Assembly (NCBI GenBank): GCA_950097015.1
Contig: CATNEN010000001.1
Location: 8,308,001-8,372,000, forward strand
Reading direction: 5' to 3'
Source of the DNA: Macrostomum hystrix
Taxonomy: Eukaryota; Animalia; Platyhelminthes
DNA length: 64,000 nt
Shown here: positions 25,194 to 62,300 of the stretch, in pieces
How positions within the stretch are numbered: the stretch's first letter is position 1
Layout: the number at the start of each line of letters is the position of its first letter
The notes under the pieces: model-generated
Told to the model about the DNA's origin: nothing
Databases searched by the model: none
Seen by the model: the letters and a program-made list of their open reading frames with translations, nothing else
Position numbers and translations under genes: made by a program

Positions 25194-26300
25194 TGATCTG
25201 AAATAAAAAGTTAAGCAAGAGGGAAACCATTTGTATTAAAATTATAGGCTGTGGCTAATATACCATCTTTAGGATGGTATAGCATACGAGATAGCACTAG
25301 AGTTTTATCATTGGCCCAGTTTTAAGGGAAAATTAATTTACTTAACTTAAGGGTTAGAGGTTAGTTAGAATGGGTAACATAGCTAAAGTTAGCAAAGTGA
25401 CTAATGATATATAATGCCACCAAATGAAATGCTCTCTATAAACTGTATAGACGGCTAGCAGCTATAGCTAGCTATACATTCTAGTATCTTCTGACTCCCT
25501 GATATCACCTTCTTTGTCTTAGCATGGAAGACATTTCAGAAAATTTTAGATTTAATAAGATGCCATTTCATGCAAAATAAGAAAGTGACGACCTAAAGAT
25601 ATCGATCCAGAAAAGTAATGATCTGGTCCTAGTTTATTGGTCTAGGCAAAAAGTAATAGCATTGTTATTAATTTACTAAAAAATTAAGCTATTAGTAACT
25701 AAACATATTATATTAAACATTGTAACTAAACCATAATAAAGTACTTATTTTGCTACAAGCTTTATTATAAGTTTTATTGACCAGGTGGCCATGAACTATG
25801 CCATATACAATTATTTTGTCTATTTCATTTGACATACAGCTATATATATAATTCTATGAATATGAAATTATCATAGGGCCTATTATCATTTTCATTCTAT
25901 TTTTAATATCATTCACTTTCATTTTTGGATATAATGTCAAAAATATTTAACTCTATCATTGATTTAACTATAATCCTAATCTCGCTATCCTAGCTAACCG
26001 AAACAATAGAAAGATAGGCCTTAAGATTGAAATTTTTTAGTTTATTATTAGAACTTAAGTAAAGGAAAGGGGCCTACCCGGTGGGACATTTACTATGCGC
26101 CCCTCTGTACGCCCCACTATGCGCCCTCCCGCCGGGCGCCGGTGGGGAGGCGTACGGTTTGGCCAAGCGCCCCGCCGGCGGGGCGTATAGCCAAACCGGT
26201 GGGATCCCGCCGGTGGGAGGTGGGTGAGAAGGGTAAATTAAATTCGGGGCATATCCTCAAAGTCTACTGTTAGTAGGCTGCGCTGTATTTTTTAAGCTTT

Positions 26301-26630
26301 GACTTTCCAGGTTAATAAGTTCGAGTGGAAATCATTTGAAATCATGAAACCAACTCAGTCGTGTAGAACATCATTTATAGATTGATTTTCAATTGAATCC
26401 CACTCGATAAACTGTGCTCAAATCTATTGGGACACCGACGACAGCCATATAGTGTACTGACATAGTCAGAGTCAAGATAAAATTTTCTAGGTGACTTTCC
26501 AGGTTAATAAGTTCGAGTGGAAATCATTTGAAATCATGAAACCAACTCAGTCGTGTAGGAAATCATTTCTAGATTGATTTTCAATTGAATCCCACTCGAT
26601 AAACTGTGCTCAAATCTATTGGGACACCGA
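26301..26630. repeat. About 190-bp tandem unit inside the inverted arms; inverted copies at 34346-34740 and 55680-55984
   Basis: GACTTTCCAGGTTAATAAG recurs at a period of 190-192 bp. Confidence 0.9.
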
Positions 26631-26945
26631 GCAGTAGGGTGAGAGGGAGAGCAGTAGGGTGAGAGTGAGAGCAGTAGGGTGAGAGGGAGATCAGTAGGGT
26701 GAGAGGGAGAGCAGTAGGGTGAGAGGGAGAGCAGTAGGGTGAGAGGGAGAGCAGTAGGGTGAGAGGGAGAGCAGTAGGGTGAGAGGGAGATCAGTAGGGT
26801 GAGAGGGAGAGCAGTAGGGTGAGAGGGAGAGCAGTAGGGTGAGAGGGAGAGCAGTAGGGTGAGAGGGAGAGCAGTAGGGTGAGGGTGAGAGCAGTAGGGT
26901 GAGAGGGAGATCAGTAGAGTGAGAGGGAGAGCAGTAGGGTGAGAG
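26631..26945. repeat. 20-bp tandem repeat GCAGTAGGGTGAGAGGGAGA; related inverted block at about 59440-59690
   Basis: Directly visible. Confidence 0.95.
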
Positions 26946-27189
26946 GAAGTGTGGTAGTTAGATGCAGTAGATTTCGCAGGAATCCGAGTTGAGTTGTATT
27001 TACGAATGTTCCCAGGTGTACAGGGAAGTCAGTTATTACAAAGCGGAAGCGGCCAAGAGTAATATTAACTGCTTCCTCTTAGAGGCTGTGCCAGACACTG
27101 GGACCATGAAGTTTGATAGCCGAAATACAACTGAATCCCTAAAGGTAAATCTATGATTCAAGACAGTGACTGGTAGTTCTATGGGAGAC

Positions 27190-28430
27190 AGTGGGTATCT
27201 CGTAGATTTTCTAGGTAGCTAGCTTATAGCTAGAAAGACAGTTACTATAGCAACACTTTATTGCGGAGACTGGCTAGATTGTCTAGCTATGGGACACGCT
27301 GTCTAGATTGATTGTTCACGGGAGACAAGCTAATCGCAAACTCATTTATTCTTACCAGCCCGTCGATGACCTGAGCGGTCAGCCAAGACTCAATCTACGG
27401 CCATGAGCTTCTGCTGCAGTTTCATGATGCTCGAACTTCTGGGAAGCAGTCTTAGAATAGACATAAATATCAATGTCATCCGCAGCTTCCGTTTGTAAAA
27501 GTACATTTCCGCAGCTTCCAAATCTGTAAAGCGATAGGTGTCCAGACTAAATAAACACAGCAGTGATAAGAAAAACTAGAGTCCAGACTAGACAAACAAA
27601 GCGTTTCTTAGAGTAGCATATAGATAGCTAGCTTATTGTAACTTGGCTAGTTGTCAATAACTGAGACACCCACCATAATTGTTTCTCTGTAACTTTTTCT
27701 CTGTTTCCTCTTTCCTCCTTCTCGCTTTAGAAGCCGTGCCAAATAATCGGGCCATGAACTTTGATCGCGGAAACGGAAATGCAACTGAATCCGGAGAGGT
27801 AAAACTATAAATCGAGAAAGTGGCTGGTTGTTCTATGGGAGACAGTGGGTAGCTACTACGAGTAGATCAAAATCTTGTAGATTTTCTAGATAGTTAACTA
27901 TAGCTAGAAAAGACAGTTACTATAGCAACACTGCATATTGCAGAGAGTGGCTAGATTGTCTAGCTATGGTAGATGGTGTCTAGATTTATTATTCACGGGA
28001 GACAATGTAGGCTCTTGGAGATCTGGTGATAGAGATAGAGATAATCGCAAACCCATTTCTTCTTACCAGCCCGTCGATGACCTGAGCGGTTTAGACGCCT
28101 TGGACTTCACCGTGATGCGCCGTGAATTCGTTGACCTCCAATCTTACGACAGCACTGCCCTCTTCGATCTCTATAAGCCGGTTGCCGACGAAGATGCCAC
28201 GGGGGCCATGAGCGCATCGGAGTGCTTCGCAGGCAAAAATGAGCAGAACAAACAACAGAACAAACAATAGAACAAACAAAACAAAAAGATTATTCAACCT
28301 TGTTGCGAGCGCAGCCGTGGAACTCCATTGACATGACATGGAGTCCGTGAAGGTCGCTGTCGTTATCTAACCTGCTAAACTCGGCCAGATACAGCTCGCC
28401 GGGATGCTGAGCCAACTGCTACTCGACGCT
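27190..28430 (+). pseudogene. Two 5' fragments of the ETS gene: the first fused to 39 bp of HES coding sequence (27380-27418), the second with the ETS domain deleted and joined to the 3' flank
   Basis: Similarity to 17513-17920, 33149-33188 and 19011-19170. Confidence 0.85.
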
Positions 28431-29488
28431 GAGTAGCTGACTGAATTAGAATAGACACTAATATCAATGTCATCCGCAGCTTCCGTTTCTTGACACGCCT
28501 GACCGTGTACCAGGCGTCAGGTGTTCATGGAAAACGTCTGGAAAAGATATGGAATGTTTCAGACCCAATTTACATATTTATCTTAATATTACATATTTGT
28601 CTATAACGATTGCCTGTAATCAGATGGGAAGCATGCGAATCTTTTAAGTGAGCTAGCTTAAGGGTCGGAGTGTAAATGTTAGTAGCAGCTTAGTATAAAT
28701 GTTAGTAGAAATGAAAAAAATGTACTTTTGCTACGAATTGTAGCAAAGCAGGCAAGCAAAGCTAGTGAGCAAGTGCAGGAACACGAAGCAAGGAGTGCTC
28801 GATAAATATGTTGGTTATCATGCTAAGCTAAAGCTAAGAATGGGTATTTAGCTAAAGCTAAGCTAAAGCTAAACATTTAGGCTGTGCATCAAGCTAATAA
28901 ATAAATATGAGTGAAATAAAGGAAGACAACAAGCAAAGATGTATTCCTAAATAATCCTAATAAATCCAATTAGGATCCAATTAAATCCAATCAGGATCCT
29001 TTCGTCTCGAAAATCGAAATGCGTCTGCGTCTGAAATGACGAAGCGGGAGGTTTCGAGGTGTGTTAGCAGCTCGTTATTGGACAGCATGAAGGTGGAGTG
29101 AGGGGTTTATCTTCGTACGCAGTTGTTATCTGCTTCTTTAAATTTGCAGATAAACTTGCTATAGGGCTTGAAGGATGGCTCATGCAATTTTCTGGTTAAA
29201 CATGAACACGACAAGACACGACATATGGCATTATGGCTACAATCATATTGAATGTGAGTACATTTTGCTACGTTGTAATATTGCATTAGCATTGCAGTGT
29301 GACAATCGCATTTTGATAAATGGTTGCTGTAATGGCTAAAAGTAAATGTTGTTTTACCAGAGTCAATGAAAACTTACACCTGCAAACGGGTATAATTTTA
29401 CTACTATAGCGCTTATTTAAAGAATTAACGATTAAGGATTAAGAATTAAGGAATAAAGGTATCACATATAGGTAGCTTAGACAAACCT

Positions 29489-29732
29489 TTATTTTTTTGC
29501 TGCTGGGGGAGGGCACCGGGGCCTGGGTGGCGTAAAGTTGGTGGCCGCCCCGGCCCCTCCCTTTTCCTTCCACCACTGGACCTTCATGTTGTCCACCATG
29601 GTGGGTAGCAGCTGCCACGGGCTGCTGCTGTTGCTGCTTCTGCTGCTGTTGCTGCTTCTGCTGCTGTTGCTGCTGCTGTGGCTGCTGCTGCTGCTGCTGC
29701 TGCTGCTCTTTTGCCTCTTTATCACGATCCAT
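29489..29732 (-). pseudogene. PolyQ microprotein copy 1, frameshifted at the end of the CAG tract
   Basis: MDRDKEAKEQ(n), then a 2-nt loss relative to copy 2 before SSPWQLLPT..VQWWKEKGGAGAATNFTPPRPRCPP. Confidence 0.6.
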
Positions 29733-30118
29733 ATTCAAGCCTAAAAGTCTGAAAATTGAAAAGTAAATAAGTAAAAGTAAAGGTAAAGCAAAAGTAGAAG
29801 TGAATAAGAGTAAAATAAGTGTATCAAAGGGTGTTTAAAATGTTCAAATGGATTTAAGGTTGTTAAAAGGATGGTAAAAGTGTATAGCTTGGTTTCACTA
29901 GCTAGAGAAACCTAGCTTTTAGCTCAATGCTCCTGAGCTACAGCTCATTGCTCATGGATGATGCCAGAGGCATTTCAGCTGAAAGCTTAAAGGAGAAGTG
30001 AAATTTGGCTACAAATAAATGAAGAGCCTGAAAGGAATTAAGGATTCAAGAAAATGAAAGCAGTTAAAATGATGGTAAAATCTTAGCAAACTGTAGTGAG
30101 GTGTAGTACATCTTAACA

Positions 30119-31330
30119 GGTCCTTATCACACAAGCTGGAATGGTGGCTTTGCTTGCTATCTTCAGGCTGGCATCTGAGAACTGGTAAGGCTTGGCTAAT
30201 CATTTGTTGTAAAGTGTTTGCTAGATACCCAATTTAGATTTGCTAAATTGTTGGTTAGCTCCTGCAAAGCAATAACAATTGATCCCAGTGTACACTAACT
30301 AGAGTTATTTGGTCTGGTACAGTTATATAACTTTGCTATGAAATTTCCTTATAATGACTATTTATTTATCAACTTTATTTTACCAGGTCTTTATCACACT
30401 GGCTCACTAGCTGGAATTGTGGCATCTGGCTGTCTTCACTCTCATGGCATAGCTAAGGGCATATGAGAACTAATCACATATGATTAAAGGCTATGGTAAG
30501 TGCTTGAGTACATAATCATTTTTGGTGTTAGCCCAACCCAGCCCAAGATACCCAACACACAATTGCTGGTTGCTTGAGCTCTTAGTTTTGATAATGCATG
30601 CACAGTAGTTTGCCTTGAGCTATTGGTTTTGATACTGCATGAGCAGTAGTTTGCCTTGAAACTGCTGTTTATGAAATTCTCTCCTCTCCTCTTCTCCTCT
30701 CCCCCCTCCTCTTCTCCTCTCCTCTCCCCTCCTTTCCTCTGCTCTTCTTTCCTCTCCTCTTCTCTCCTGCCTTTATTCTCCTCTTCTCTTCTTGTTTCTA
30801 CAAGCAATATAAGTGATCCTAGTGTACACTAGAGTTATTTGGTCTTGTACAGTTATATAACTTTGCTATGAAATTTCCTTATAATGACTATTTATTTATC
30901 AACTTTATTTTACCAGGTCTTTATCACACTGGCTCACTAGCTGGAATTGTGGCTTCTGGTTGTCTTCACTCTCATGGTATAGCTAAGGGCATATGAGAAC
31001 TAATCACATATGTAAAGGCTATGGTAAGTGCTTGAGTACATAATCATTTCTCAGTGTTAGCCCAACCCAGCCCAAGACACCCAACACACAATTGCTGGTT
31101 GCTTGAGCTCTCAGTTTTGATAATGCACGCACAGCAGTTTGCCTTGAGTTATTGGTTTTGATACTGCATGAGCAGTTGTTTGCCTTGAAACTGCTGTTTA
31201 TGAAATTCCTCTAGCTAGTGACTATTTATTTATGAACACTATTTTCCCCAGGTCTTTATAACACTAGCTAGAATTGTGGCATTGCTAGCTATCTTTACTG
31301 AGTTATCTGATGTACTAGAGTGTACACTTG
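30119..31330 (+). repeat. Tandem 0.4-0.65-kb units, each with an exon-like segment (TTTTACCAG|~109 nt|GTAAGT), the longer units also with a CT microsatellite; two full units here, five at about 48725-51600
   Basis: Directly visible repeats. Example exon 30387-30495 has stop codons in all three frames. Confidence 0.85.
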
Positions 31331-32651
31331 AGCTATCAGATCTTGTACATTTATGCTCAAGCCCCATACACAGTTCATACCAGCCATGTATAATTACCTC
31401 AATTGTGGTCCTATTTAACCTAATATAGCTAACAATCCTTTATAAGCTCTTATCAGCCTTCTGCCCCTTCTTGCCTAGCTATAGATCTAAATACAAACAG
31501 CAAACCAACTGTCTCACCTCTCACACCTAACAGGACAAGGAGAGCCTATCTAACAGGACAAGGAGTCCCAAGAATGTGAGTCTGGTGTTGAAGCTGAATG
31601 GCCAACAATCAACAACAGCCTGTTGAGTGCCAACCAAAAAGACATGATTGACTTAAGTGTGAATAAACTAATCTTGTTCTGAATGCCTTTATGAATATTG
31701 ATTAAACTGAGGCCCTCTTTTTATCCCTAGTTGACATTTCAAAATTTGCTAATATAGATAAACACAGAACTTGAGCTGCTATAAGAGACTTAAAGGTAAA
31801 AAGGTAAAAATGTGCCTTCTGTAAAAACTGTAGCTACAGTGCATAAATATTTCAGAACCTATACACAAACTTCATAAGAACACACTTTGCTGCTGTATTC
31901 ATATAACATACTCTAAATACAAATGCCAACTCAAATAATTATGACATGGCTGAAATTCCTAGCAATTAAATGCTTGAAATAATAATTAGCTTTGCAAAAT
32001 AAACTTTCCAGCTATGTTTCGTAAAGAAATGGCAGGAAAAAATCTTATGAGTCTTTGTATTTATTTCGTCTTGTCTAATTATTTTCAGTGTCAACTTATG
32101 TTTATCGGTTTGAAATTTCACACTTGCATTAGATTAACGGAGAAGTGAAAGTGAAAGTGAAAACAAAGGTTTGCAGTGCATTGCAGCTTAAAAAGTGATT
32201 TGCTCAAGCCAAAATAAATGTAAATTCTCAAATTCTACGTTTGAGAAGTATGTGATATATGAAATATGTTTATGGTTTTCTAACTATTGCTGTGTGACTG
32301 GCTTTTTGAAGGACAAAAACACTTTTTCACTGGCTGTTGTTAAGCCAAAGTGGCGTCAAGACTGACAATGCCGTAGGAAATTAGCGCTGTACATTATGAA
32401 AATTCTAACTACAACTGTATAATGCTGCTGCAGTTCTAAATATCAATTCGGTTTTGGTTTTCTCGCTTTTTAATTTTATAAAACAAAATATTTTTACGAA
32501 GATCAAGCTGCTGGCTGCAGAAGTGTTCAGTCCATGGACTGGGTTACGCCATGCTGACCCTTATCTAAAAATTCTGAAGTTTGTTTTCTCAAAGGGAACA
32601 ACGACTCAGAGAACTTAAAGCCCGTCAGAACTTCAGAATAAGCCGCCTGTC

Positions 32652-32898
32652 CACCTGTGTTGACAGTCATTTTTTAATTCACACGCTCGTTGCAACGAAG
32701 ATGATCTATCTTGTTTGCTTATGAGGTTTGTTTTTAGATAAGGCACATTTGGGAGAATCTAGGCTGAACATGACAGCTAAAACTGCAGAACATTCTAGAA
32801 CATTCTGGAACAGAATTCATTTCACGAGTGAAGCGGGGATAGAGGAAAGGAAACAGGGGGTTGGCGGTGCAGGGGGGTACTTATAAAATTATAAACTC
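32652..32898 (+). promoter_or_regulatory. Putative HES promoter: E-box CACCTG 32652, CSL/Su(H)-type TTCACACG 32678, N-box CACGAG 32823, TATA 32882; same in copy 2
   Basis: Short motif matches of the types known from HES promoters. Not tested statistically. Confidence 0.4.
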
Positions 32899-32921
32899 GG
32901 CCGGTCGATTTCAAAATTTCG

Positions 32922-33290
32922 ATGGAGCTCCGAATTAAAAAAACACAAACCACGCGCCCAGTAGAGTTGATGGAGCATAGGAGAATCAGCAAGCAGGTGA
33001 TGGAGCAGCAGCGCAGAGCCAGAATTCATGCCAGCTTGGACAGACTCATAGAGCTGCTGCAGGCCAACAAGGTGATAAAACCGTACCGGATTAAGCGCCT
33101 AGAAAAGGCCGACATCCTGGAGCTGACTGTTAAGCTGCTGCTGAATGGCTCAGCCAAGACTCAATCTACGGCCATGAGCTTCTGCTGCAAGTCTTCGGCC
33201 TCATCAACGGTGTCGGCTTTGTCTACTGACGAAGAATCTAGCCAGTCGATGGACCAGGAGGGAGCCCAGCCTGTGTGGCGTCCTTGGTAA
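32922..33290 (+). CDS. hes: Intronless Hairy/E(spl)-family bHLH repressor with C-terminal WRPW and no Orange domain (122 aa)
   Basis: RRISKQVMEQQRRARIHASLDRL..KRLEKADILELTVKLL, terminal VWRPW*, TATA box upstream. Confidence 0.93.
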   Translation: MELRIKKTQTTRPVELMEHRRISKQVMEQQRRARIHASLDRLIELLQANKVIKPYRIKRLEKADILELTVKLLLNGSAKTQSTAMSFCCKSSASSTVSALSTDEESSQSMDQEGAQPVWRPW

Positions 33291-33384
33291 CCGGCCCCTG
33301 GCAACAGCATCCGGCATTCCAGCATAAGTCAACTTAGTGAATTAGTTTCGTCGTTTTTTTATTTAGTTGTCATGGACTGATTGT

Positions 33385-34100
33385 CCCCAAACTGAGGATC
33401 TGGGATTGTCACGAAACTGAGAATCTGGGATTGTCACCAAACTGAGGATCTGGGATTGTCACCAAACTGAGGATCTGGGATAATTGTCATTAAACTGAGG
33501 ATCTAGGATTGTCCCGAAACTGAGGATCTGGGGTTGTCACGAAACTGAGAATCTGGGGTTGTCACCAAACTGAGGATCTGGGATTGTCACCAAACTGAGG
33601 ATCTGGGATAATTGTCATTAAACTGAGGATCTGGGATTGTCCCAAACTGAGGATCTGGGATTGTCACCAAACTGAGGATCTGGGATTGTCCCAAACAGAG
33701 GATCTGGGATTGTCACCAAACAGAGGTTCTGGGATTGTCACCAAACTGAGGATCTGGGATAATTGTCATTAAACTGAGCTTTAAATGTTTATATATTGTT
33801 GTATCATTGTATCGTTGTATCGTATCAATGTTGTATCATTGTTGTTGTGTTGTATCAGTGTTGTATCAATGCTTAGTTCATTTCATTGTTTAAAACTTTT
33901 TATCTGGGGGATTATCACCAATCTGGGATTGTCCCAAACTGAGGATCTGGGATTGTCACCAAACAGAGGATCTGGGATTGTAACCAAACTGAGGATCTGG
34001 GATAATTGTCATTAATCTGAGCTTTAAATTTTTATATATTGTTGTATCATTGTATCGTTGTATCGTATCAATGTTGTATCATTGTTGTTGTGTTGAATAC
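33385..34100 (+). repeat. 25-bp repeat AAACTGAGGATCTGGGATTGTCACC interleaved with TTGTATC-rich blocks; expanded at about 53690-55460
   Basis: Directly visible immediately 3' of both HES copies. Confidence 0.95.
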
Positions 34101-35339
34101 AAATCATTAAATAAATAAATCAATATATGCTCAGTTAAAGAGTGACTATAAGCATGCCAAACTTAGCTGGTACCTACGAGAGTCAGTTCCGATGTCGCCG
34201 CATTAGAAATCAACTAATGCGAAACAAAAAATTTAAATGCTTTCACTGTCGATCAATTATTTTCTTTGATCTCTTTCTGACTTGCTCATGCCATTTTAAA
34301 GAACTGACTTACCTGTATTACGTATTACGTATTATGACTTACGTATTAACCTGGAAAGTCAGCTAGAAAATTTTATCTTAACTCTGACTATGTCAGCAGT
34401 ATATGGCTGTCGTCGGTGTCCCAATAGATTTGAGCACAGTTTATCGAGTCGGATTCAATTGAAAATCAATATAGAAATGATTTCCTAAACGACTGAGTTG
34501 GTTTCATGATTTCAAATGATTTCCACTCGAACTTATTAACCTGGAAAGTCACCTAGAAAATTTTATCTTGACTGTGACTATGTCAGCAGTATATGGCTGT
34601 CATCGGTGTCCCAATAGATTTGAGCACACTTTATCGAGTCGGATTCAATTGAAAATCAATATAGAAATGATTTCCTAAACGACTGAGTTGGTTTCATGAT
34701 TTCAAATGATTTCCACTCGAACTTATTAACCTGGAAAGTCAAAGCTTAAAAAATACAGCGCAGCCTACTAACAGTAGACTTTGAGGATATGCCCCGAATT
34801 TAATTTACCCTTCTCACCCACCTCCCACCGGCGGGATCCCACCGGTTTGGCTATACGCCCCGCCGGCGGGGCGCTTGGCCAAACTATACGCCCCCCGCCG
34901 GTCACCGGTGGGAGGGCGCATAGCGGGGCGTACAGAGGGGCGCTAGCGCCCAACCCGCCGGTGTACCACCGGGTAGTCATAAGTTAAGAAAAACTTTTCA
35001 ATTACCATATAACACGCATATTCATAAAACATCCACATTTTGCCATAATTCTATAAACCTAATATAATTAATCAAGGCGATAATACCCTCGAGGCGGCCA
35101 AGGCCTAATACTAACTAATAGCAACAGGTCAAGCTATATGTTGTTAAAGGTCAACTACCAAGCCCAAGACACAAGAATGATAAAATAAGCTCTTTGGTTC
35201 TATCCAAGAACAGTTGAAACAACAAAAGAATATAAAAGTTCCTAAGCCAAAAGACAGGCCAATTTTAAGTTTAGTAGACTTCAGACACTGCCCTGGTAAG
35301 AAACAAAATATATTACTAAGTTCTTATTCATACTGTACT

Positions 35340-35635
35340 TTTTTTATTACACCTGCCCCAATCGGGCCAGATGTGCAGCCGACAGCACAGCCGCAGCTAT
35401 TGCGCGGCGCATCTGAAGGCTGCGTACAGCTGTTCAGTCCATGGACTGGGGGGACGCCACACCCACCTTCAATTATCCCAGCTGATGCTGGTACCCATTT
35501 AGCAGCTGGGTGAACTGAAGCAATGCAGAGTTAAGTGTCTTGCTAAAGGACACAAATTGTTTCAGTGGAGTCAGGAATCGAACCCCCGACCTTCAAGTCG
35601 TTAGTCCGACGCCCTAACCACTAGGCTACAACCTC
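35340..35635 (-). mobile_element. tRNA-derived SINE, next to a (GTACT)n microsatellite
   Basis: Head GGTTGTAGCCTAGTGGTTAGG...GGTTCGATTCC (A and B boxes) runs into GTGTCCTTTAGCAAGACACTT...CACCCAGCTGCTAAATGGGTACC, a SINE2-type central domain, and ends in an A-rich tail. Confidence 0.85.
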
Positions 35636-36495
35636 TTCAACTACTGTACTGTACTGTATTGTACTGTACTGTACTGTACTGTACTGTATACTGTACTGTA
35701 TATCCATAATAAATGAGCTACAAGATATAGCACAAATTATTGATAAAATTGCAAAAAGATGTGAACTACAAAAACAACCAAGGCATTTTGCAACTCCCTA
35801 TTGGACTTTCTCGATCCCGCAATCTCTGTGACTATTGATTCAGACTGATGTTGAATGTGGAACTGTTAATTGACTATATATCTATAAGTTTCCTAGCTTA
35901 GAAGAAGTAATAATTGGCTCAGGTAATGAACCTGTCAAGCCAATGTACGAGTATATTTAAGGCGTCAAAAATGAGGAAGGTAAACAACGATGAATGGAGT
36001 AAGCAGAAGACGCTAAAAACCAAGGACCACTAGAAGAAGATCTGTATATTTTCTTCTAGTGGTCCTTGGCAAAAACATGTAAAGCATGTAAAAGACAAAA
36101 AATGTTAAATACCCTTTCTTAGCGAGCTTTATGAAAATATAAAAAAGAAAAGAAAATTATTACTGAGTAACAAAGATACTCTCCTTCAACTAAAGTGAAA
36201 AGCTTTTGTTAAGAATCGTTCAAGCCGCAATTGCACTTCCGTAGCTTCTTGTCCGCTGACGCAGCAGCAGCACGGTGACTTGCCGAAAAAATACAAAACT
36301 GTCTTTTTGCATCCAAACGCTTAAATTTAGCCAATCTAGGGCTGCAAATTGTTCTTTAAGGTTTAAAGTTAACGTTAAAGACTTCATTTTTAAAGTTTAA
36401 AAAATCCACTCCTAAAGCGACTGTCGCACACGGGCCACGCGCGGGCCGCCGATTTCTTTCCCAGTGGGAAGCTGCAGATAAAATAATCAGTTATA

Positions 36496-51100: not shown

Positions 51101-53222
51101 AATATAAGTGATCCTAGTGTACACTAGAGTTATTTGGTCTGGTACAGTTATATAACTTTGCTCTGAAATTTCCTTATAATGACTATTTATTTATCAACTT
51201 TATTTTACCAGGTCTTTATCATACTGGCTCACTAGCTGGAATTGTGGCTTCTGGTTGTCTTCACTCTCATGGTATAGCTAAGGGCATATGAGAACTAATC
51301 ACATATGATTAAAGGCTATGGTAAGTGCTTGAGTACAAAATCATTTCTCAGTGTTAGCCCAACCCAGCCCAAGATACCCAACACACAAATTTTTTGCTGG
51401 TTGCTTGAGCTCTCAGTTTTGATAATGCACGCACAGCAGATTGCCTTGAGCTATTGGTTTTGATACTGCATGAGCAGTTGTTTGCCTTGAAACTGCTGTT
51501 TATGAAATTCCTCTAGCTAGTGACTATTTATTTATGAACACTATTTTCCCCAGGTCTTTATAACACTAGCTAGAATTGTGGCATTGCTAGCTATCTTTAC
51601 TGAGTTATCTGATGTACTAGAGTGTACACTTGAGCTATCAGATCTTGTACATTTATGCTCAAGCCCCATACACAGTTCATACCAGCCCTGTATAATTACC
51701 TCAATTGTGGTCCTATTTAATCTAATATAGCTAACAATCCTTTATAAGCTCTTATCAGCCTTCTGCCCCTTCTTGCCTAGCTATAGATCTAAATACAAAC
51801 AGCAAACCAACTGTCTCACCTCTCACACCTAACAGGACAAGGAGAGCCTATCTAACAGGACAAGGAGTCGCAAGAATCCTAGTCTGGTGTTGAAGCTGAA
51901 TGGCCAACAATCAACAACAGCCTGTTGAGTGCCAACCAAAAAGACATGATTGACTAACTGTGAATAAACTAATCTTGTACTGAATGCCTTTATGAATATT
52001 GATTAAACTGAGGCCCTCTTTTTATCCCTAGTTGACATTTCAAAATTTGATAATATAGATAAACACAGAACTTGAGCTGCTATAAGAGACTTAAAGGTAA
52101 AAAGGTAAAAATGTGCCTTCTGTAAAAACTGTAGCTACAGTGCATAAATATTTCAGAACCTATACACAAACTTCATAAGAACACACTTTGCTGCTGTATT
52201 CACATAACATACTCTAAATACAAATGCCAACTCAAATAATTATGACATGGCTGAAATTCCTAGCAATTAAATGCTTGAAATAATAATTAGCTTTGCAAAA
52301 TAAACTTTCCCTATGTTTCGTGAAGAATTGGCAGGAAAAAATCTCATGAGTCTTTGTATTTATTTCGTCTTGTCTAATTAATTTCAGTGTCAACTTATGT
52401 TGATCGGTTTGAAATTTCACACGGGCATTAGATTAACGGAGAAGTGAAAGTGAAAGTGAAAACAAAGGTTTGCAGTGCATTGCAGTTTAAAAAGTGATTT
52501 GCTCAAGCCAAAATAAATGTGAATTCTCAAATTCTACGTTTGAGAAATATGTGATATATGAAATATGTTTATGATTTTCTAACTATTGCTGTGTGACTGG
52601 CTTTTTGAAGGACAAAAACGCTTTTTCACTGGCTGTTGTTAAGCCAAAGTGGCGTCAAGACTGACAATGCCGTAGGAAATTAGCGCTGTACATTATGAAA
52701 ATTCTAACTACAACTGTGTAATGCTGCTGCAGTTCTAAATATCAATTCGGTTTTGGTTTTCTCGCTTTTTAATTTTATAAAACAAAATATTTTTACGAAG
52801 ATCAAGCTGCTGGCTGCAGAAGTGTTCAGTCCATGGACTGGGTTACGCCATGCTGACCCTTATCTAAAAATTCTGAAGTTTGTTTTCTCAAAGGGAACAA
52901 CGACTCAGAGAACTTAAAGCCCGTCAGAACTTCAGAATAAGCCGCCTGTCCACCTGTGTTGACAGTCATTTTTTAATTCACACGCTCGTTGCAACGAAGA
53001 TGATCTATCTAATTGTTTGCTTATGAAGTTTGTTTTTAGATAAGGCACATTTGGGAGAATCTAGGCTGAACATGACAGCTAAAACTGCAGAACATTCTAG
53101 AACATTCTGGAACGGAATTCATTTCACGAGTGAAGCGGGGATAGAGGAAAGGAAACAGGGGGTTGGCGGTGCCGGGGGTACTTATAAAATTATAAACTCG
53201 GCCGGTCGATTTCGAAATTTCG

Positions 53223-53591
53223 ATGGAGCTCCGAATTAACAAAACACGAACCACGCGCCCAGTAGAGTTGATGGAGCATAGGAGAATCAGCAAGCAGGTG
53301 ATGGAGCAGCAGCGCAGAGCCAGAATTAATGCCAGCTTGGACAGACTCATAGAGCTGCTGCAGGCCAACAAGGTGATAAAACCGTACCGGATTAAGCGCC
53401 TAGAGAAGGCCGACATCCTGGAGCTGACTGTTAAGCTGCTGCTGAATGGCTCAGCCAAGACTCAATCTACGGCCATGAGCTTCTGCTGCAAGTCTTCGGC
53501 CTCATCAACGGTGTCGGCTTTGTCTACTGACGAAGAATCTAGCCAGTCGATGGACCAGGAGGGAGCCCAGCCTGTGTGGCGTCCTTGGTAA
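53223..53591 (+). CDS. hes: Intronless HES bHLH-WRPW gene, copy 2 (122 aa)
   Basis: Differs from 32922-33290 at 3 residues and keeps the canonical RARIN. Confidence 0.93.
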   Translation: MELRINKTRTTRPVELMEHRRISKQVMEQQRRARINASLDRLIELLQANKVIKPYRIKRLEKADILELTVKLLLNGSAKTQSTAMSFCCKSSASSTVSALSTDEESSQSMDQEGAQPVWRPW

Positions 53592-55532
53592 CCGGCCCCT
53601 GGCAACAGCATCCGGCATTCCAGCATAAGTCAACTTAGTGAATTAGTTTCGTCGTTTTTTTATTTAGTTGTCATGGACTGATTATCCCCAAACTGGGGAT
53701 CTGGGATTGTCACGAAACTGAGGATCTGGGATTGTCACGAAACTGAGAATCTGGGATTGTCACCAAACTGAGGATCTGGGATTGTCACCAAACTGAGGAT
53801 CAGGGATTGTCACCAAACTGAGGATCTGGGATAATTGTCATTAAACTGAGGATCTGGGATTGTCACGAAACTGAGGATCTGGGATTGTCCCAAACAGAGG
53901 ATCTGGGATTGTCACCAAACAGAGGTTCTGGGATTGTCACCAAACTGAGGATCTGGGATAATTGTCATTAAACTGAGCTTTAAATTTTTATATATTGTTG
54001 TATCATTGTATCGTTGTATCGTATCAATGTTGTATCATTGTTGTTGTGTTGTATCAGTGTTGTATCAATGCTTAGTTCATTTCATTGTTTGAAACTTTTT
54101 ACCTGGGGGATTATCACCAATCTGGGATTGTAACCAAACTGAGGATCTGGGATTGTCATTAAACTGAGCTTTAAATGTTTATATATTGTTGTATCATTGT
54201 ATCGTTGTATCGTATCAATGTTGTATCATTGTTGTTGTGTTGTATCAGTGTTGTATCAATGCTTAGTTCATTTCATTGTTTGAAACTTTTTACCTGGGGG
54301 ATTATCACCAATCTGGGATTGTAACCAAACTGAGGATCTGGGATTGTCATTAAACTGAGCTTTAAATGTTTATATATTGTTGTATCATTGTATCGTTGTA
54401 TCGTATCAATGTTGTATCATTGTTGTTGTGTTGTATCAGTGTTGTATCAATGCTTAGTTCATTTCATTGTTTGAAACTTTTTATCTGGGGGATTATCACC
54501 AATCTGGGATTGTCCCAAACTGAGGATCTGGGATTGTCACCAAACAGAGGATCTGGGATTGTAACCAAACTGAGGATCTGGGATAATTGTCATTAAACTG
54601 AGGATCTGGGATAATTGTCATTAAACTGAGCTTTAAATGTTTATATATTGTTGTATCATTGTATCGTTGTATCGTATCAATGTTGTATCATTGTTGTTGT
54701 GTTGTATCAGTGTTGTATCAATGCTTAGTTCATTTCATTGTTTGAAACTTTTTATCTGGGGGATTATCACCAATCTGGGATTGTCCCACACTGAGGATCT
54801 GGGATTGTCACCAAACAGAGGATCTGGGATTGTAACCAAACAGAGGTTCTGGGATTGTCACCAAACTGAGGATCTGGGATAATTGTCATTAAACTGAGCT
54901 TTAAATGTTTATATATTGTTGTATCATTGTATCGTTGTATCGTATCAATGTTGTATCATTGTTGTTGTGTTGTATCAGTGTTGTATCAATGCTTAGTTCA
55001 TTTCATTGTTTAAAACTTTTTATCTGGGGGATTATCACCAATCTGGGATTGTAACCAAACTGAGGATCTGGGATTGTCATTAAACTGAGCTTTAAATGTT
55101 TATATATTGTTGTATCATTGTATCGTTGTATCGTATCAATGTTGTATCATTCTTGTTGTGTTGTATCAGTGTTGTATCAATGCTTAGTTCATTTAATTGT
55201 TTGAAACTTTTTATCTGGGGGATTATCACCAATCTGGGATTGTCCCACACTGAGGATCTGGGATTGTCACCAAACAGAGGATCTGGGATTGTAACCAAAC
55301 AGAGGTTCTGGGATTGTCACCAAACTGAGGATCTGGGATAATTGTCATTAAACTGAGCTTTAAATGTTTATATATTGTTGTATCATTGTATCGTTGTATC
55401 GTATCAATGTTGTATCATTGTTGTTGTGTTGTATCAGTGTTGTATCAATGCTTAGTTCATTTAATTGCTTAATTTTTTTAATTAACTAATACAAACCATT
55501 AAATAAATAAATAATTAAATAAATATATGCTC

Positions 55533-55633
55533 TTGACTTACTTGACTTAGCGGCAGGGAGCCTCCATGACGGACGCAGCGAGGAGGCGGCCGGTGCCGCC
55601 CATATCGGAAGCTTAGACTTAGAAGCTTATCGG
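55533..55633 (-). mobile_element. 101-bp insertion with 11-bp target-site duplication, likely a 5'-truncated non-LTR retroposon
   Basis: AATATATGCTC at 55522-55532 and 55634-55644, but only once in the paralogous site (34122). TAAGTCAAG-type tandem tail. Confidence 0.7.
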
Positions 55634-56621
55634 AATATATGCTCAGTTAAAGAGTGACTATAAGCATGCCAAACTTTATCGGGTCGGATTCAATTGAAAA
55701 TCTATCTAGAAATGATTTCCTACACGACTGAGTTGGTTTCTATTCTCAAATGATTTCCACTCGAACTTATTAACCTGGAAAGTCACCTAGAAAATTTTAT
55801 CTTGACTCTGACTATGTCAGTACTATATGGCTGTCGTCGGTATCCCAATAGATTTGAGCACAGTTTATCGAGTCGGATTCAATTGAAAATCTATCTAGAA
55901 ATGATTTCCTACACGACTGAGTTGGTTTCATGATTTTAAATGATTTCCACTCGAACTTATTAACCTGGAAAGTCACCTAGAAAATCCCGGGCTCTATGAG
56001 CAATGGGATATTGCATGCATGCGACTTTCCCAGTGCTATTTTTAGAGCAGCACATGAACAAACAGAGCTGGGAATTGCCGTTCGAGCTGAGCATGACAGC
56101 TAGGACTGATAAGAAGTTTCTAGAACGGAAATCAGCGGAGCGGGGATAGAGACGTTTTCTAGCACCGAAAATGTAAAGGAAAGACATGCGTTCACGCATG
56201 TACATGTTGGCAATAAAGCTATTTAGAAAGCAGCGAAAAGTGACGTACAGTCACACAGTTTTAAAGCTCACCAGAACTCTAGAGCAGTGTCTCGTTGGCA
56301 CATTGAGGATCTGGGATTGTCACCAAACTGAGGATCTGGGTTGTCATTAAACTGAGCTTTAAATTTTTACTTGTTGTATACCGACTGAACACATGCGGGA
56401 TGAAGGCTTAGTTCATTTCGTTGTTTCAAACATTTTAATTAACTAATACAAATCTTAAAACAAATATATGTCTATAAATATATGGTCAGTTAAAGAGTGA
56501 CTAAGCATGCCAAACTTAACTGGTGCCTACGAGAGAAATCAACTAATGCGAAACTAAAAATTTAAACTCTTTCTGTCTCAAATCTTTTCTTTGATCTCTT
56601 TCTGACTTCTCATGCCATTAA

Positions 56622-59394
56622 CCTCTTCAAACCTAAGCTCTAACGCCTACACAGTCAGTTCTGCCGGATGGCCAGCAGGACTGGCCATAGACTATTTTTG
56701 CTCGCTTCTTCACTCTCTTAACCTCCGGTAAACAAAAATAAGCCCAGACCTTCCCTATTTTCAGTCTCTTTTTCTCTCCAAAAAATGGCTTTAGCCCCCA
56801 GACGCTCTTTAAGAGTTGCGGCCTTAGAAGCCAGACGCGCTCTAGGCTTGCACAGTGATTCAGAAAGCAGCTCAGACGGCGAAACGGAATCTGACAATTC
56901 TGAATTTGAAGAAGGAACTGGAGATGAAGGAATGGACGAAACACAGCAGACTCCAGAGGTTCAAGCAACGCCATGGCAAATCGTAAATGAACATACTGAT
57001 GCGATTCATGTCCAACAGCGAGAGTTTTTGGGCACCCCGGGAATCAACCCTGGCTTGAATCCGTCGGACAACATCGAAGACAACTTAAATCTTTTTTTAA
57101 CACCAGAGTTGTTTGAGCATCTGGCCCACTGGACCAACAACCGAGCTCAGCGAGCTAGACAAGAATTTGAATCTCATCAGGACGCTGAAGATCCACTCCC
57201 AGCTAAATTGAGCGCGTGGTACGACTGCACGGCAAACGAGATAATGAAGTATGTTGGCATGGTGCTCTACATGGGGCTTAACAGAAGGGTGGAATTACGG
57301 CAGTACTGGTTTATTGATGCGTTCTACGCTACTCCGTACTTTCAACTACCCTGTTGTCTGTCGCGGGATCGCTTTGCAAACATCTCATCGTTTCTGCGAT
57401 TTTACGACTGCCAATCAGAGGACGAGGAAGACGTCCTGGGGAAAATCCGACCGTTTATGAACATCCTGCAGGGCTGCTTCAAGAGTGTCTATATGCCAGA
57501 GAGAGAAGTCGCTGTTGATGAAACCCTGGTGCACTTCAGGGGACGATTCAAGTGCAAGCAGTACATACCAACCAAGCGAGCCCGCTATGGTATCAAGATG
57601 TACTGCTTGTGTGAGTCGTCAACAGGCTACCTCAGCAATTTCGAGGTTCACTCCACGTTGGAAGCGAATCAGCAAGTAGGGGTGGAGCTTAATGACGGAA
57701 CACTAACCTTTGGCGGAAGGGTTGTTGCCGAGCTCTGCCGAGAGATCTTGGGCCTGGGATACCATGTTTACTGCGACAGCTACTTCGGCTCCTTGTCCCT
57801 AGCAGAGTTCCTGGACACCAGAGGCACCCTGCTGACTGCAACAGTTAGGGCCGATCGCGGAATTCCAGCAGAGCTCAGGGACTTAAGGCTTACTGCGCCG
57901 GGCACTGCCTTCATGCGCAACGAATCCATACTCGCCGTAAAAATCACGGATAGGAAAGCCAGCGGAGTTAAGCAGCTCTATATGCTGGACTCAGCGAATG
58001 TCGCCGCAGAACATGAAGTAACACGGGTTGGACATGGTGGGCGCCAGGAACGAGTGCGGAAATCACGGTCTGTGCTGGACTACAACAAGCATATGGGTGG
58101 CGTGGACCGCCTAGATGCAACCGTGCAACCCTATAGACCTGATCGAAAGACCTTCCGCTGGTTCGTGCGCCTCGGTGTCCACATGATGTTGGTATCATGC
58201 AGGAATGCTTGGGTAGTGTACACGCGCTGTGGAGGAAAAAAGGTTTTCGGGCAGTTTCTGGACTCAGCAGTGCGACACATGATCGAATCGACCGGTCCCG
58301 GTCGTAAGAGGAAGCTTCACCTGGGTCCTGTGAGAGTCGGAACCGGGCACCTGCCAAGAAAGTTGCCGCCAACGGACAAGCAAGCTCACCCGACAAAGCG
58401 ATGCCGAGTGTGCTTCAAAGGTCAGTCTGCCAGGAAAACAGTTTTCTGCTGCCCTGAATGCGTCGGCCAGCCTGGGTTGTGTCTTGAAGGCTGTTTTGAA
58501 CGTTGGCATGCGGCGGCTGAGATGTAAGGATAAACAATTTTTTCTATGTTAAATACTTTCAAATCTGGAAAAGCGTACAGTCTAGGGCACACGTTTTTAG
58601 TAAACTTTTTTATATTTTGCGCATGCACACATGTAAAACCTGTTTAAAATGAAAAAAACTGCAGCAACGTTACCGCTTCATGTGTTTTTGTTCAGTTGTT
58701 TGTATATTGTTAAATGCGCGTCAAATTTTGAAATTTCTCCCACTAGAAGATGATCTCGTTTTGATTTGATCTATTTTGATTCGCCTAGACAACTGATTGT
58801 TCACAGTAGAATTTTAGACCATTTTATTACGTCTTAAAAGCTATAGTCGTATCATCTAGCATATTTATATTTTTGGAATTAAAATATGATTGTGATGAGT
58901 CTTTATCTGTAAATAGCTCGTGCATTTACTGGTAATAGCTGCGTAATGTCTCGAAATATATGGAGAAAAAAACTTTTCTTGTACATGTGTCTCCTTAATA
59001 CAGAATTTTAACCATCACGTTCTACATGTACACACGTATTAGGTATTTAAATTTTTCCGCTGCAAAACTATTCCAATATGTTTTTTGCTCGTAATATATG
59101 CCCAAAATCAACAGTTTTGTTGGAGGTTGTCTGAAAAGATCATCATATTTTATACACCCGTATTAGCACTTGTTGATTTACATGTAATAAACGGTATACC
59201 ACTGTTAAATATCTTTTGTCTGAAAGGTTACGCCAAGAAATGCAAAGCTATTTTCGATTTTGTTTCATGGCCAGCTGGGCTGGCCATTCCGGCAGTTGGG
59301 ACCGTGTAGCTTTTCAACATGAAACTCCCATAGACTATGGGCAGTTTGCTTAGTGAGCCATGGCCAGCAGGGATGGCCATCCGGGTTTTCGGGG
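56622..59394 (+). mobile_element. piggyBac transposon
   Basis: TTAA|CC at 56618-56623 and GG|TTAA at 59393-59398. Subterminal inverted repeats CCGGATGGCCA..CTGGCCA at 56648-56690, 59267-59309 and 59361-59384. Confidence 0.8.
56785..58527 (+). CDS. piggyBac transposase, intact 580 aa
   Basis: AVDET, YIPTKRARYGIK, YCDSYF, YNKHMGGVDRLD (DDD triad) and the C-terminal Cys-rich domain CRVC..CPEC..LCLEGCFERWH. Confidence 0.96.
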   Translation: MALAPRRSLRVAALEARRALGLHSDSESSSDGETESDNSEFEEGTGDEGMDETQQTPEVQATPWQIVNEHTDAIHVQQREFLGTPGINPGLNPSDNIEDNLNLFLTPELFEHLAHWTNNRAQRARQEFESHQDAEDPLPAKLSAWYDCTANEIMKYVGMVLYMGLNRRVELRQYWFIDAFYATPYFQLPCCLSRDRFANISSFLRFYDCQSEDEEDVLGKIRPFMNILQGCFKSVYMPEREVAVDETLVHFRGRFKCKQYIPTKRARYGIKMYCLCESSTGYLSNFEVHSTLEANQQVGVELNDGTLTFGGRVVAELCREILGLGYHVYCDSYFGSLSLAEFLDTRGTLLTATVRADRGIPAELRDLRLTAPGTAFMRNESILAVKITDRKASGVKQLYMLDSANVAAEHEVTRVGHGGRQERVRKSRSVLDYNKHMGGVDRLDATVQPYRPDRKTFRWFVRLGVHMMLVSCRNAWVVYTRCGGKKVFGQFLDSAVRHMIESTGPGRKRKLHLGPVRVGTGHLPRKLPPTDKQAHPTKRCRVCFKGQSARKTVFCCPECVGQPGLCLEGCFERWHAAAEM

Positions 59395-62300
59395 TTAATG
59401 GCATTAATGAAATTAATCGTAATTAAAATTTAAACATTCTACTACATCTCACCACCCCACTTCCCCTCACTCTACTGCATCTCACTACCACACTTCCTCT
59501 CACTCTACTGCATCTCACTATCCCACTTCCTCTCACTCTACTGCATCTCACTATCCCACTTCCTCTCACTCTACTGCATATTACTACCACACTTACTCTC
59601 ACCCTACTGCTCTCCCTCTCACCCTACCTGATCCCCCTTTCACCATACCTGCTCTCCATCTCACCCTACTGATCTCCCTCTCACCCTACTAATCTAGGGA
59701 ATCTAGGGATTCTAGGGAAGGCACGGAATCGATTTTGGGACCTCCCTTAATCCAGATTGATCTCGACGAATTTTGAGTCCCTATGCTCTATGATAAATGT
59801 AGAGGAAATTGAAAATTAGAAGCAACCGTGTTAATTTATATACTAGCTAGCTATTATACTAAGTTGTCATGCAGAGTCATATAATTTCAGTCTACATGAG
59901 CAGGTCTTTCGGAAAGAATGAGCTATAGGATATGACTGAAACAGTATCCTATCGTTTCTACTAATAGTAGCACATGGCGAATTAATCTTCCTCCAAATAT
60001 TTTCGCATACGAAAAAAAAGTTGGAAAATTTAGTAGAAAATTTCGAAAATGATGCAAACAATATTTCCAAATTTAAGAGCAACTAGACATGTTAAAAGTG
60101 AAATAATAATATTTTTCTGCAACCATAAGTCACGTGTACTACACGAAAAGAAAAAAAACCGCGTAAAAAGTGATGTTTACAAAACCGTGCGCCCAGGCGG
60201 CGGGAGGCGTATAGCAAGGGCGTATAGGAAAATTGCTATGCGCCCAGGCGGCGGGAGGCGTATAGCAAGGGCGTATAGGAAAATCACTATGCGCCCCGGC
60301 GCCGGCTGGGCGTATAGCGGGGCGCACGGCGCCCCACTCTGCGCCCCAAAAAGCTGTCCCACCGGGTGGGTTACAAAATCGACACATGAATATGGAACGT
60401 CCGGAATATCGAGCCGTGACGGATCTTCAACAAAATCAACACAAGCAGTCGGCTAAAAGATCACGAATGCAACAATTTAACGGCGACGAACGCAGCCGAT
60501 GCTGACAACGAGCTGCGGACAAAATTAATAAACGATTGGAAGTTTTTTCAATTTTATTATACTGCATAAAACCTGAATTTGAAAGTGCAACTAAAATGAT
60601 AGCTGAGATAAAATGCTTTTGCTTAATTTATTGTTTGCCAAAAGAGTGCGATTTTTTCGCTCCTGCGCTTGTTGCCAGGCAGCATCGACGCCAGCGTTGT
60701 CGAGAACCCACCGCAACGCGTGCGTCTTGCGGTCCTGCAAAGTCAAGTTGTGTGAAAAGAAGCCTAGATCAGGAGAATCTGACTTTGTGCTGACTTAATT
60801 TTAAGGTATAATGAGAATTCTGTCAAGAAAGTAATGTCAGATTTTAAGCAGCCGTACTGATTTCACATTTAATTTGACATTTCGCTATTTTCTTCGTACC
60901 GACTTTATAATAATTCATTCCAATTGCAATTATCATAAATACCGACTATTTACCTTATCCATTTCACGATTGGAGCCCTACATTTCACGTAGGAGCCCAT
61001 TTGATTGACTATAGGTTCACTCGCTCATCGAATGTCTATTCACAATCTGTGTCAACAATGGAAGGCCTGTCAGTAGACAGAGCAGGACAGGTGACATCAG
61101 CCCTTAATGTGGTGCTTAACGTCATCTGACAGGCCAAAGCTGCGAGTTTAAGGAAACTGCGAGTTTTTGACTATCAAGTTTTGCTCAAATTTTTATATTT
61201 GTCGAAGTTTCCTTACGTTCGCTGTGAATTTTTATGTCAATACTAAAGCAGAAAAAAGACGCCAAACCATTTGTTAAATCTACATAACGACTTAGTAGTT
61301 TTACACTTATGACTTCAACTTAAAAGAATTACAACACAAAAACAGTGTTGTTTTATAAAACTTACAAATATGAAGTTAAGGTACTGCGTTTAAATAAAAA
61401 TATATATATATAATACCAAAATCTCAAACAAAGCTGAGCTTGTTTTATACCTTAAAATTCGTGTCGATGTTCGATCTACCTAATTACTTAAGCTCGATTT
61501 ACTTAAAAAACACTGATCGAATAGCAGACGGGACTTTCACTACTCGTCACTACACATGTACTCGTACGTTGATTATAAGAACCAGACTCGAGAATCTCCA
61601 TTCGATAATAAGTGTCCTATAAGTCTCCTGTTATCCACGACCTTGCGTCTTAATAATCACAGTTGTAAAAACGGCCTCCCTCGGGGCCACCTACACCGAG
61701 GACAAGGTCACACCCGCCTCTCTTCCGAAAAGAAGAGGGCCGCGCAAAAGAAAAAGCCAACACGCGGGGTGACGGCAAAACACTACTATAGGAAAAAGCA
61801 GTTTACAGGAGTATAGTGTCTATGACGAATAACAGCGTGGTGATAGGATAAAAAGGTTAGGTGGTTACAGGAAGTTTTAAAGTTACAAATCCTTCTGAGG
61901 CTTACTTTAGACGAAATTACATTGGCGTTACAGATGACATTACAGATGAATAGTTACGTTAAAGTCACGGTCATAACGACAGGTTACATTGGCGGTTTAC
62001 GACATTACGGAAAGCCAATTTTAGTTTCAACATTACATTGACATTAGACGGGCCGAGCGGGAGGCGTTCGAGCTACCGTGTGATTACAGGAAATTACATA
62101 GGTTACAAGGCGGCGCGGCGATTACAGAGATTGGCATTCTACTCGAAAGGCGGTGATACAGAAGGCAGAGGTGAGAGGCACGAGTCCAATCAACCGACGC
62201 CAAGCGTCAGGGCTGGCGGGACACGGCGCGGCAAAAGTCTTCCTCTGATCTTTTTACTTCATTTAATTCTACATGTACTACATCATTACACATGATTGCG

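Follow-up and report, generated by a model that had tools for sequence, protein, structure and literature searches.

Are the developmental transcription-factor genes at this locus of the flatworm Macrostomum hystrix carried by DNA transposons, and if so, of what kind? The window analysed here is a stretch of 64,000 nucleotides (contig 1, 8308001-8372000; the assembly comprises 220.45 Mb in 42 contigs). An earlier note, made from the sequence alone, had read it as two CMC/CACTA-like elements with terminal inverted repeats (TIRs), each packaging an intact HES gene, pieces of ETS genes and a polyglutamine (polyQ) microprotein. Our analysis favours, at a probability of roughly 0.88, a reading in which both are internally deleted, non-autonomous copies of one CMC-superfamily family, of the animal CACTA-related TRC type, that amplifies a HES/ETS cargo.

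The ends of the elements are sharply defined. CCCGGTGG stands at five positions in the window (26077+, 34966-, 44681+, 45343+ and 60359-), where shuffled sequence would give 0.55, and all ends that we verified start with CCCGGTGG(G/T)ACA; element 1 and element 2 both end exactly there (Table 1). In element 1, TA precedes CCCGGTGGGACA on the left and follows CCACCGGG on the right (an end also written TGTACCACCGGG), and in element 2, TG precedes CCCGGTGGGACA on the left and follows TGTCCCACCGGG on the right. At element 1, where 2 bp match, no match of 3 bp was found. TATRCGCCC is present 14 times in both orientations (0.46 expected), each copy lying no more than about 150 bp from a terminus or at the inner copy at 45359, and a further motif, CCGGTGGG, is found ten times, at the ends only; subterminal arrays of the CMC kind are therefore present. 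Direct reading of both elements thus bears out the TA and TG flanks given in the earlier note, as well as its TATRCGCCC repeats at all four ends.

The two elements differ in end subtype. In element 1 (L1/R1), the arms are 95% identical over about 540 bp (26093-26630 vs. 34946-34413). The L2/R2 pairing of element 2 recurs at C1:3506459/3543857, C33:5132352/5165673 and C1:9036087/9009410. The extra left end that had been raised as a caveat does exist: it repeats the terminal 38 bp internally, in the orientation of the end at 44681. Doubled termini at similar spacing (632 and 662 bp) recur at two further loci, C1:14179426/14180058 and C1:19416002/19416664, and for this reason we read the 45343 end as an inherited subfamily feature rather than the partner end of a miniature inverted-repeat transposable element (MITE). 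The window holds two independent insertions 9.7 kb apart, with differing end subtypes and duplications.

Do such ends behave as transposon ends elsewhere in the genome? The 12-mer CCCGGTGGGACA occurs 82 times in the assembly, compared with 12 times for the reversed control. At 12 different termini, homology ends exactly at the first C and the flanks outside are unrelated; the DNA directly outside element 2 (about 235 bp on one side and 400 bp on the other) is single-copy. Pairing of plus and minus termini yielded 17 candidate elements: the two in the window, twelve large ones and three small ones (70, 144 and 561 bp). For copies outside the window, the analysis covered termini, ORFs and a few loci of 3-4 kb. 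Identical dinucleotides flank 13 of the 17 pairs, where about one would be expected by chance (binomial probability ~1e-12), and ten different dinucleotides are represented among the matching pairs (TA, TG, TT, AC, GG, GT, TC, AA, CT and AG). Because the ends are sharp, the flanks unrelated or single-copy, and the matching dinucleotides variable, these are, judged by their junctions, cut-and-paste elements that make a 2-bp target-site duplication with no sequence preference. Both the genome-wide search for termini and the comparison of flanking dinucleotides, which the earlier note had proposed as checks, came out as it anticipated.

Some members of the family are little more than their own termini. 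Two mini-elements made only of two ends, at C37:487885-487954 (70 bp, AG) and C1:8066369-8066929 (561 bp, CT), have matching duplications, suggesting that about 35 bp per end may be enough for mobilisation. A different history applies on contig 39, where two L2 termini 23.8 kb apart (C39:16410407 and 16434224) have identical outside flanks; such flanks show that segmental duplication, not transposition, copied this locus. The distribution of the family is also uneven: contig 1 makes up 12.5% of the assembly, yet holds about 80% of the verified members (51 of 82 termini, 30 of 33 HES matches and 32 of 48 ETS matches).

Neither window element encodes a transposase of its own, as the earlier note had stated. 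A tblastn search of the window with the 646-aa transposase described below found no CMC transposase, and both elements are therefore non-autonomous. Relatives that do encode one were found outside. A copy at C38:21951122-21966876, with the duplication AA, is 97-99% identical to the backbone of element 1 (26076-27037, 27038-27917 and 34267-34973), and holds 12.6 kb between the backbone parts, with two overlapping open reading frames (ORFs) bearing SDGLPLY, WP and CDTPAR motifs; it thus has a transposase where element 1 has cargo. The best full-length frame is an intact 646-aa ORF at C1:14184566-14186506, within an element (C1:14179426-14203495) whose ends are of the L2/R2 type, like those of element 2. 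The autonomous element with the same termini that had been proposed as a further check therefore exists.

Database homologues of the 646-aa protein include Macrostomum lignano proteins (84% identity) and proteins with DUF4218 or Transposase_21; three or four of 23 homologues match PF02992 or PF13960 directly. A family profile built from the 23 sequences aligned to a protein containing PF02992 and PF13960 with an hhalign probability of 99.7% (E 1.5e-25, 349 columns). In the family alignment D186, D263 and E509 are invariant, and the nearest named clusters in a language-model atlas carry Transposase_21 or DUF1258. Since the transposase profile, the CCC termini and the 2-bp duplications match those of animal TRC elements, the family is, by these sequence criteria, an animal CACTA-related (CMC/TRC) DNA transposon with a predicted tnp2-related DDE transposase. 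The CMC/CACTA-like assignment of the earlier note is in keeping with this, the subterminal arrays included. Full copies also have a conserved ORF of 120-144 aa (MKFLIVFEADRQVIE...) on the opposite strand just upstream of the transposase (L057:22-384(-), L051:4274-4705(-) and, in the window, 20541-21267(-)), for which no Pfam match was found.

What do these elements carry? Each window element contains an intact 122-aa HES-like ORF with a TATA box and a heat-shock element, so that the intact HES gene with promoter described earlier stands in both. The HES-like ORFs score 30-35 bits against Pfam HLH (cut-off 20.7); the bHLH motif is RRARIN in most copies (RRARI in that of element 1), and both window copies and most others end in PVWRPW, a Groucho-binding motif. 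Nearly all named database matches are HES-3, hairy-related or E(spl) proteins. There was no match to the Orange domain (PF07527) at E <= 0.01, and the bHLH is followed by no more than about 50 residues of low complexity. Hairy and HES proteins have a proline in the basic region; here the basic region, SKQVMEQQRRARIN, has Q at this site, as does the M. lignano homologue. Because HLH, RRARI(N) and WRPW are present, and the Orange domain and the basic-region proline are missing, the predicted cargo protein is HES-like but minimal. In copy 1, translation may actually start at the second ATG (32970).

Copies of this gene are numerous. At least 23 occur in the genome, at 74-98% protein identity and all but two on contig 1, and 14 of them match over 701 bp, promoter included, at 97-99%. 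Nine duplication-verified end pairs contain HES, namely the two window elements and seven others on contig 1 (Table 1), and in all eight elements with typed ends, HES points to the R-type end. The gene therefore lies between verified termini at loci megabases apart and is not restricted to a tandem cluster. The earlier expectation of HES copies between matched termini at unlinked loci holds as far as distance is concerned, and falls short in that all nine pairs share a single contig.

The heat-shock element lies about 65 bp upstream of the TATA box (32882-32888). One copy of an older subfamily is without exactly this 32-bp block, and also without the 4-bp insertion that creates the first ATG. 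Canonical heat-shock elements give long terminal repeat (LTR) retrotransposons strong heat induction in M. lignano (PMC12801592), which makes heat inducibility of the HES cargo gene plausible.

The second cargo gene encodes an ETS domain. At locus L057, a decayed transposase is followed on the same strand, after 90 bp, by a family ORF of 208 aa (Pfam Ets, 5e-20); the pieces of ETS genes noted earlier in both window elements are, by tblastn, two different parts of this ORF (Table 1). At least 30 copies of the ETS domain are present on contig 1, several of them near the L end inside verified HES-bearing elements. The order of the cargo is constant, L - (transposase) - ETS - HES - R, across three end subtypes (L1/R1, L1'/R3 and L2/R2). 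This consistency indicates that the cargo represents one ancient acquisition, inherited and then variously deleted, and was not packed separately by each element. Because transposase-bearing copies carry HES and ETS too, the label 'Pack-type' fits only loosely. Thus, of the animal Pack-CACTA family proposed earlier, the family itself and its amplification of a whole HES gene with its neighbours are upheld, and the packing is replaced by inheritance.

Upstream of element 1 lies a third, degraded stretch of the same family (13252-13545, 17766-18678 and 20541-21267). Within it are the C-terminal part of a HES gene, an older ETS copy that is complete (Pfam Ets 4e-20, 18325-18684) and the small minus-strand ORF known from just ahead of the transposase in full copies; there is no CCCGGTGG terminus close by, and the order is unlike that of one intact element. 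The polyQ microprotein did not hold up. Open frames do span a CAG/CTG repeat, but the frames of the polyQ and conserved C-terminal portions differ between elements 1 and 2, and we therefore reject it as a conserved gene.

Taken together, these results suggest the following course of events. An ancestral element would have taken up two genes, an ETS-domain gene and a small HES-like bHLH-WRPW gene that was intronless and brought its own TATA promoter; a heat-shock element is present as well in the HES promoter of the young subfamily. The 646-aa DDE transposase of full-length relatives would recognise the 12-bp CCCGGTGGGACA termini and the TATRCGCCC/CCGGTGGG arrays, excise the whole element and reinsert it with a 2-bp target duplication and no sequence preference. 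Transposition that raises copy number would duplicate the riding genes as well, and would account for the 23 or more HES and 30 or more ETS copies; local reinsertion would explain their concentration on contig 1. Element 2 was later struck by a piggyBac transposon. Directly observed in this scheme are the sharp ends, the 2-bp duplications, the unique flanks, the autonomous partner, the cargo within verified end pairs and the fixed order of its genes; what we infer is the matching of transposases to types of end, present-day activity, local hopping, and that the cargo is expressed or functional at all.

Several observations weigh against it. All nine verified HES-bearing pairs are on one 27.5-Mb contig, so that 'unlinked' means megabases apart and not on different chromosomes. 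No host parent gene was found: every HES match of at least 74% identity is an amplified copy, most of them near family termini, and the next best matches are at 31-43%. Pfam scans of the 646-aa ORF and of the family's transposase pieces gave no direct match; the CMC assignment draws on the homologues and their profile, and membership of the related KDZ group is formally conceivable. Four of the 17 candidate pairs do not have matching dinucleotides. Three of these sit among crowded termini and are likely mis-paired; the fourth is the 144-bp element on contig 24. At C1:14179401-14179437 (L064), an R2-type end minus its last GGG (GCTGTCCCACC) directly abuts the L2 terminus CCCGGTGGGACA, and no duplication separates the two. 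Here two elements are joined head to tail, the left end of one against the truncated end of the other, in a way that our scheme does not explain. No paralogous empty site for element 2 is present in the assembly, both flanks being single-copy. Finally, the substitution in the right terminus of element 1 may mean that this copy is immobile now.

Has the transposon lineage kept HES, ETS or both for its own use, as a heat-inducible Groucho-recruiting repressor, or as an ETS protein that binds the CCGGTGGG motifs in the manner of TnpA in En/Spm? Such a role would fit the invariant position and orientation of HES in the L1/R1, L1'/R3 and L2/R2 subfamilies and in transposase-bearing copies, the ETS ORF that closely follows a transposase, the HES ORF that is open in at least 15 copies, and the 32-bp block, forming a canonical heat-shock element, by which the young amplified subfamily differs from the older copy. 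A 149-aa bHLH-WRPW protein of M. lignano also shares the unusual SKQVME...RRARIN basic region. Against this, 13 intact young HES copies have 8 synonymous and 15 non-synonymous variants, giving a ratio of non-synonymous to synonymous rates (dN/dS) of 0.56 by variant count and 0.71 pairwise, which is not significantly below 1, and the ratio rises to 1.1-1.6 when young copies are compared with two older intact ones. The transposase of the same family, used as a control, has a dN/dS of 0.28-0.56. Moreover, the HES ORF differs at 4 of 369 bases between elements 1 and 2, a level of conservation no higher than that of unique non-coding sequence close by, and in older copies the upstream start or the WRPW end has been lost. 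On these grounds, the HES copies look like young passengers under no clear purifying selection, although, as is usual with transposon copies, such figures are compatible with selection on the active lineage. The copy with the intact transposase and the contig 38 copy carry neither HES nor ETS, which weakens ETS as an obligatory TnpA-like partner. We therefore consider a kept cargo unlikely. If it were true, the targets of element-kept HES/ETS regulators could be host genes or the CCGGTGGG/TATRCGCCC repeats of the element itself, and transposition would actively rewire HES/ETS dosage in Macrostomum.

Much less probable still is that a host HES/ETS cluster expanded by tandem or segmental duplication among independent short MITEs, with the 'elements' being chance pairings of their ends. 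Two collinear cargo blocks about 20 kb apart with a third degraded stretch at 13-21 kb are what such a history might leave; short derivatives of 70-561 bp do exist elsewhere, and the contig 39 pair was indeed copied in this way. However, homology stops exactly at the termini, with unrelated or single-copy flanks, and sequence outside the termini that had been duplicated along with the elements, as segmental duplication predicts, was not found. The window elements differ in end subtype and duplication, dinucleotides match far more often than chance pairing allows, and no window terminus has an inward-facing partner end nearby. As for the enzyme, element 2 does contain an intact 580-aa piggyBac transposase ORF (DDE_Tnp_1_7, PF13843, 6e-67, plus zf-Tnp_2), and one might suppose that this moves the elements. 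Yet it belongs to a 2.77-kb unit that is complete in itself and flanked by TTAA duplications of its own; copies of this unit, 99.5-99.9% identical and ending at the same bases, are found on contigs C34, C41 and C10 without surrounding CCCGGTGGGACA termini; the outer elements duplicate 2 bp and not TTAA. The nested boundaries and the duplication type refute piggyBac as the mobilising enzyme, and we give the idea almost no credence. The piggyBac is an independent later insertion into element 2 and not its transposase; its copies are spread over many contigs, unlike the HES-carrying family with its bias to contig 1. Amplification of a HES/ETS cargo by a CMC/TRC family is thus the reading that we retain.

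The remainder of the window holds other repeats. Arrays of an 18-bp satellite lie at 1-2016, 6088-7236 and 16112-16639, with 85-92% identity between blocks and the first block opposite in orientation to the other two, and a 40-bp array lies at 20109-20418. The spacer between the elements (35000-44445) is GC-rich, reaching 52-58% at 40-44 kb, and contains several ORFs of 90-255 aa. These retroelement-like spacer ORFs (35-44 kb) had no Pfam match; one of them, 38892-39371(-), ends in KLKNNALFGKTK, which we take to resemble a family-B DNA polymerase motif. At 44281-44445 lies the margin of a repeat that is present at least 25 times in the genome.

Table 1. Positions of the two elements, their parts and their cargo in the window, and of further verified HES-bearing elements on contig 1 (C1).
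Feature	Position	Strand	Remarks
Element 1	26077-34973	+	non-autonomous CMC/TRC transposon; L1/R1 ends; 8.9 kb; 2-bp duplication TA at 26075-26076 and 34974-34975
Left long inverted-repeat arm, element 1	26077-26630	+	12-bp terminus CCCGGTGGGACA; TATRCGCCC and CCGGTGGG subterminal motifs
20-bp tandem array inside left arm, element 1	26629-27008	.	same array in the contig 38 copy
ETS fragment, element 1	28100-28234	+	aa 1-45 of the family 208-aa ETS ORF, inside ORF 27938-28270; tblastn 76%, E 9e-17
Heat-shock element, copy 1	32788-32818	+	five alternating GAA/TTC units plus GAATTC
HES-like gene, copy 1	32922-33290	+	intronless; 122 aa; bHLH with RRARI motif; C-terminal WRPW; no Orange domain
Right long inverted-repeat arm, element 1	34413-34973	-	terminus with one substitution, G to T (CCCGGTGGTACA)
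Element 2	44681-60366	+	non-autonomous CMC/TRC transposon; L2/R2 ends; 15.7 kb; 2-bp duplication TG at 44679-44680 and 60367-60368
Internal same-orientation copy of terminal 38 bp ('extra left end')	45343-45380	+	preceded by 29-bp tandem array, 44933-45158
ETS fragment, element 2	45784-45948	+	aa 154-208, C-terminal part of ETS domain; 95% identity, E 4e-31
Cargo block, element 2	46601-55431	+	collinear with element 1 28268-34095; 87-97% identical; internal tandem arrays expanded
Heat-shock element, copy 2	53090-53120	+	upstream of second HES copy
HES-like gene, copy 2	53223-53591	+	122 aa; 4 nucleotide differences from copy 1
Nested independent piggyBac	56622-59394	+	TTAA at 56618-56621 and 59395-59398; intact 580-aa transposase ORF 56785-58527; 2.77 kb
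R2 terminus, element 2	60180-60366	-	~51-bp subterminal repeats carrying TATRCGCCC in both orientations
Verified HES-bearing pair	C1:3506459-3543857		
Verified HES-bearing pair	C1:8270821-8282379		
Verified HES-bearing pair	C1:9009410-9036087		
Verified HES-bearing pair	C1:17794322-17803647		
Verified HES-bearing pair	C1:19957940-19982181		
Verified HES-bearing pair	C1:27086569-27103949		
Verified HES-bearing pair	C1:27112392-27134782		

Plants provide well-documented cases of gene capture by cut-and-paste transposons; the animal cases have mostly been short fragments, present once, in hAT and mariner elements. In the CACTA-related flatworm family described here, a complete, promoter-equipped repressor gene of the Notch-pathway type has been multiplied more than 20-fold, together with an ETS gene, and at many loci a predicted heat-shock-responsive promoter now stands beside a repressor that recruits Groucho. 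In this way, developmental regulators could be expanded in a lineage-specific manner. In the literature that we searched, there was no report of HES or ETS as transposon cargo, nor of this family in Macrostomum. The genus is tractable: with transgenesis and heat-shock reporters in M. lignano, expression of the cargo, selection on it and any harm it does are directly testable. The M. hystrix genome paper left the repeat content undescribed (PMC10468722), and termini, 2-bp duplication and transposase now provide a concrete family definition for its annotation.

Among known systems, the closest is SmTRC1 of Schistosoma which, like insect TRCs, has TIRs starting with CCC, 2-bp duplications, a Transposase_21 domain and internal tandem repeats (DeMarco et al., 2006; PMC1636069). 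The Macrostomum family shares with it a flatworm host, CCC TIRs, 2-bp duplications, a tnp2-related transposase, internal tandem repeats and many truncated derivatives (PMC1636069). SmTRC1, however, is about 4.7 kb long and is described without cargo genes (PMC1636069), whereas the Macrostomum elements span 9-37 kb, have long (~540 bp) or asymmetric subterminal regions, and carry complete HES-like and ETS-like genes.

Plant CACTA elements have CACTA ends and make 3-bp duplications. The Macrostomum elements resemble plant En/Spm and Pack-CACTA elements, for which gene capture is known, in their short conserved termini, bidirectional subterminal arrays, non-autonomous derivatives moved in trans, and capture and relocation of chromosomal DNA (PMC6379663). 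Pack-type elements usually carry gene fragments, whereas the Macrostomum cargo includes a whole gene with its own promoter, which is also found in transposase-bearing copies. In animals, a survey of Pack-TIR elements listed 370 cases in 100 genomes, 87% of them hAT or Tc/mariner, with a median capture of 224 bp and only a handful in multiple copies; its main text contains neither 'CMC' nor 'flatworm' (Tan et al., 2021; PMC8277862). Like these, the Macrostomum elements are TIR DNA transposons that duplicate non-transposon sequence and become multicopy by repeated transposition (PMC8277862), but they differ in having a multi-kb cargo (about 6 kb in element 1), a complete gene, more than 20 copies and membership of the CMC family.

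Cargo-bearing giants are also known outside animals, in Starships and in fungal KDZ elements with TET/JBP genes. The likeness to such giant transposons is that of large DNA elements amplifying host-type regulatory genes along with a transposase (PMC6431247), and the difference is one of host kingdom or recombinase.

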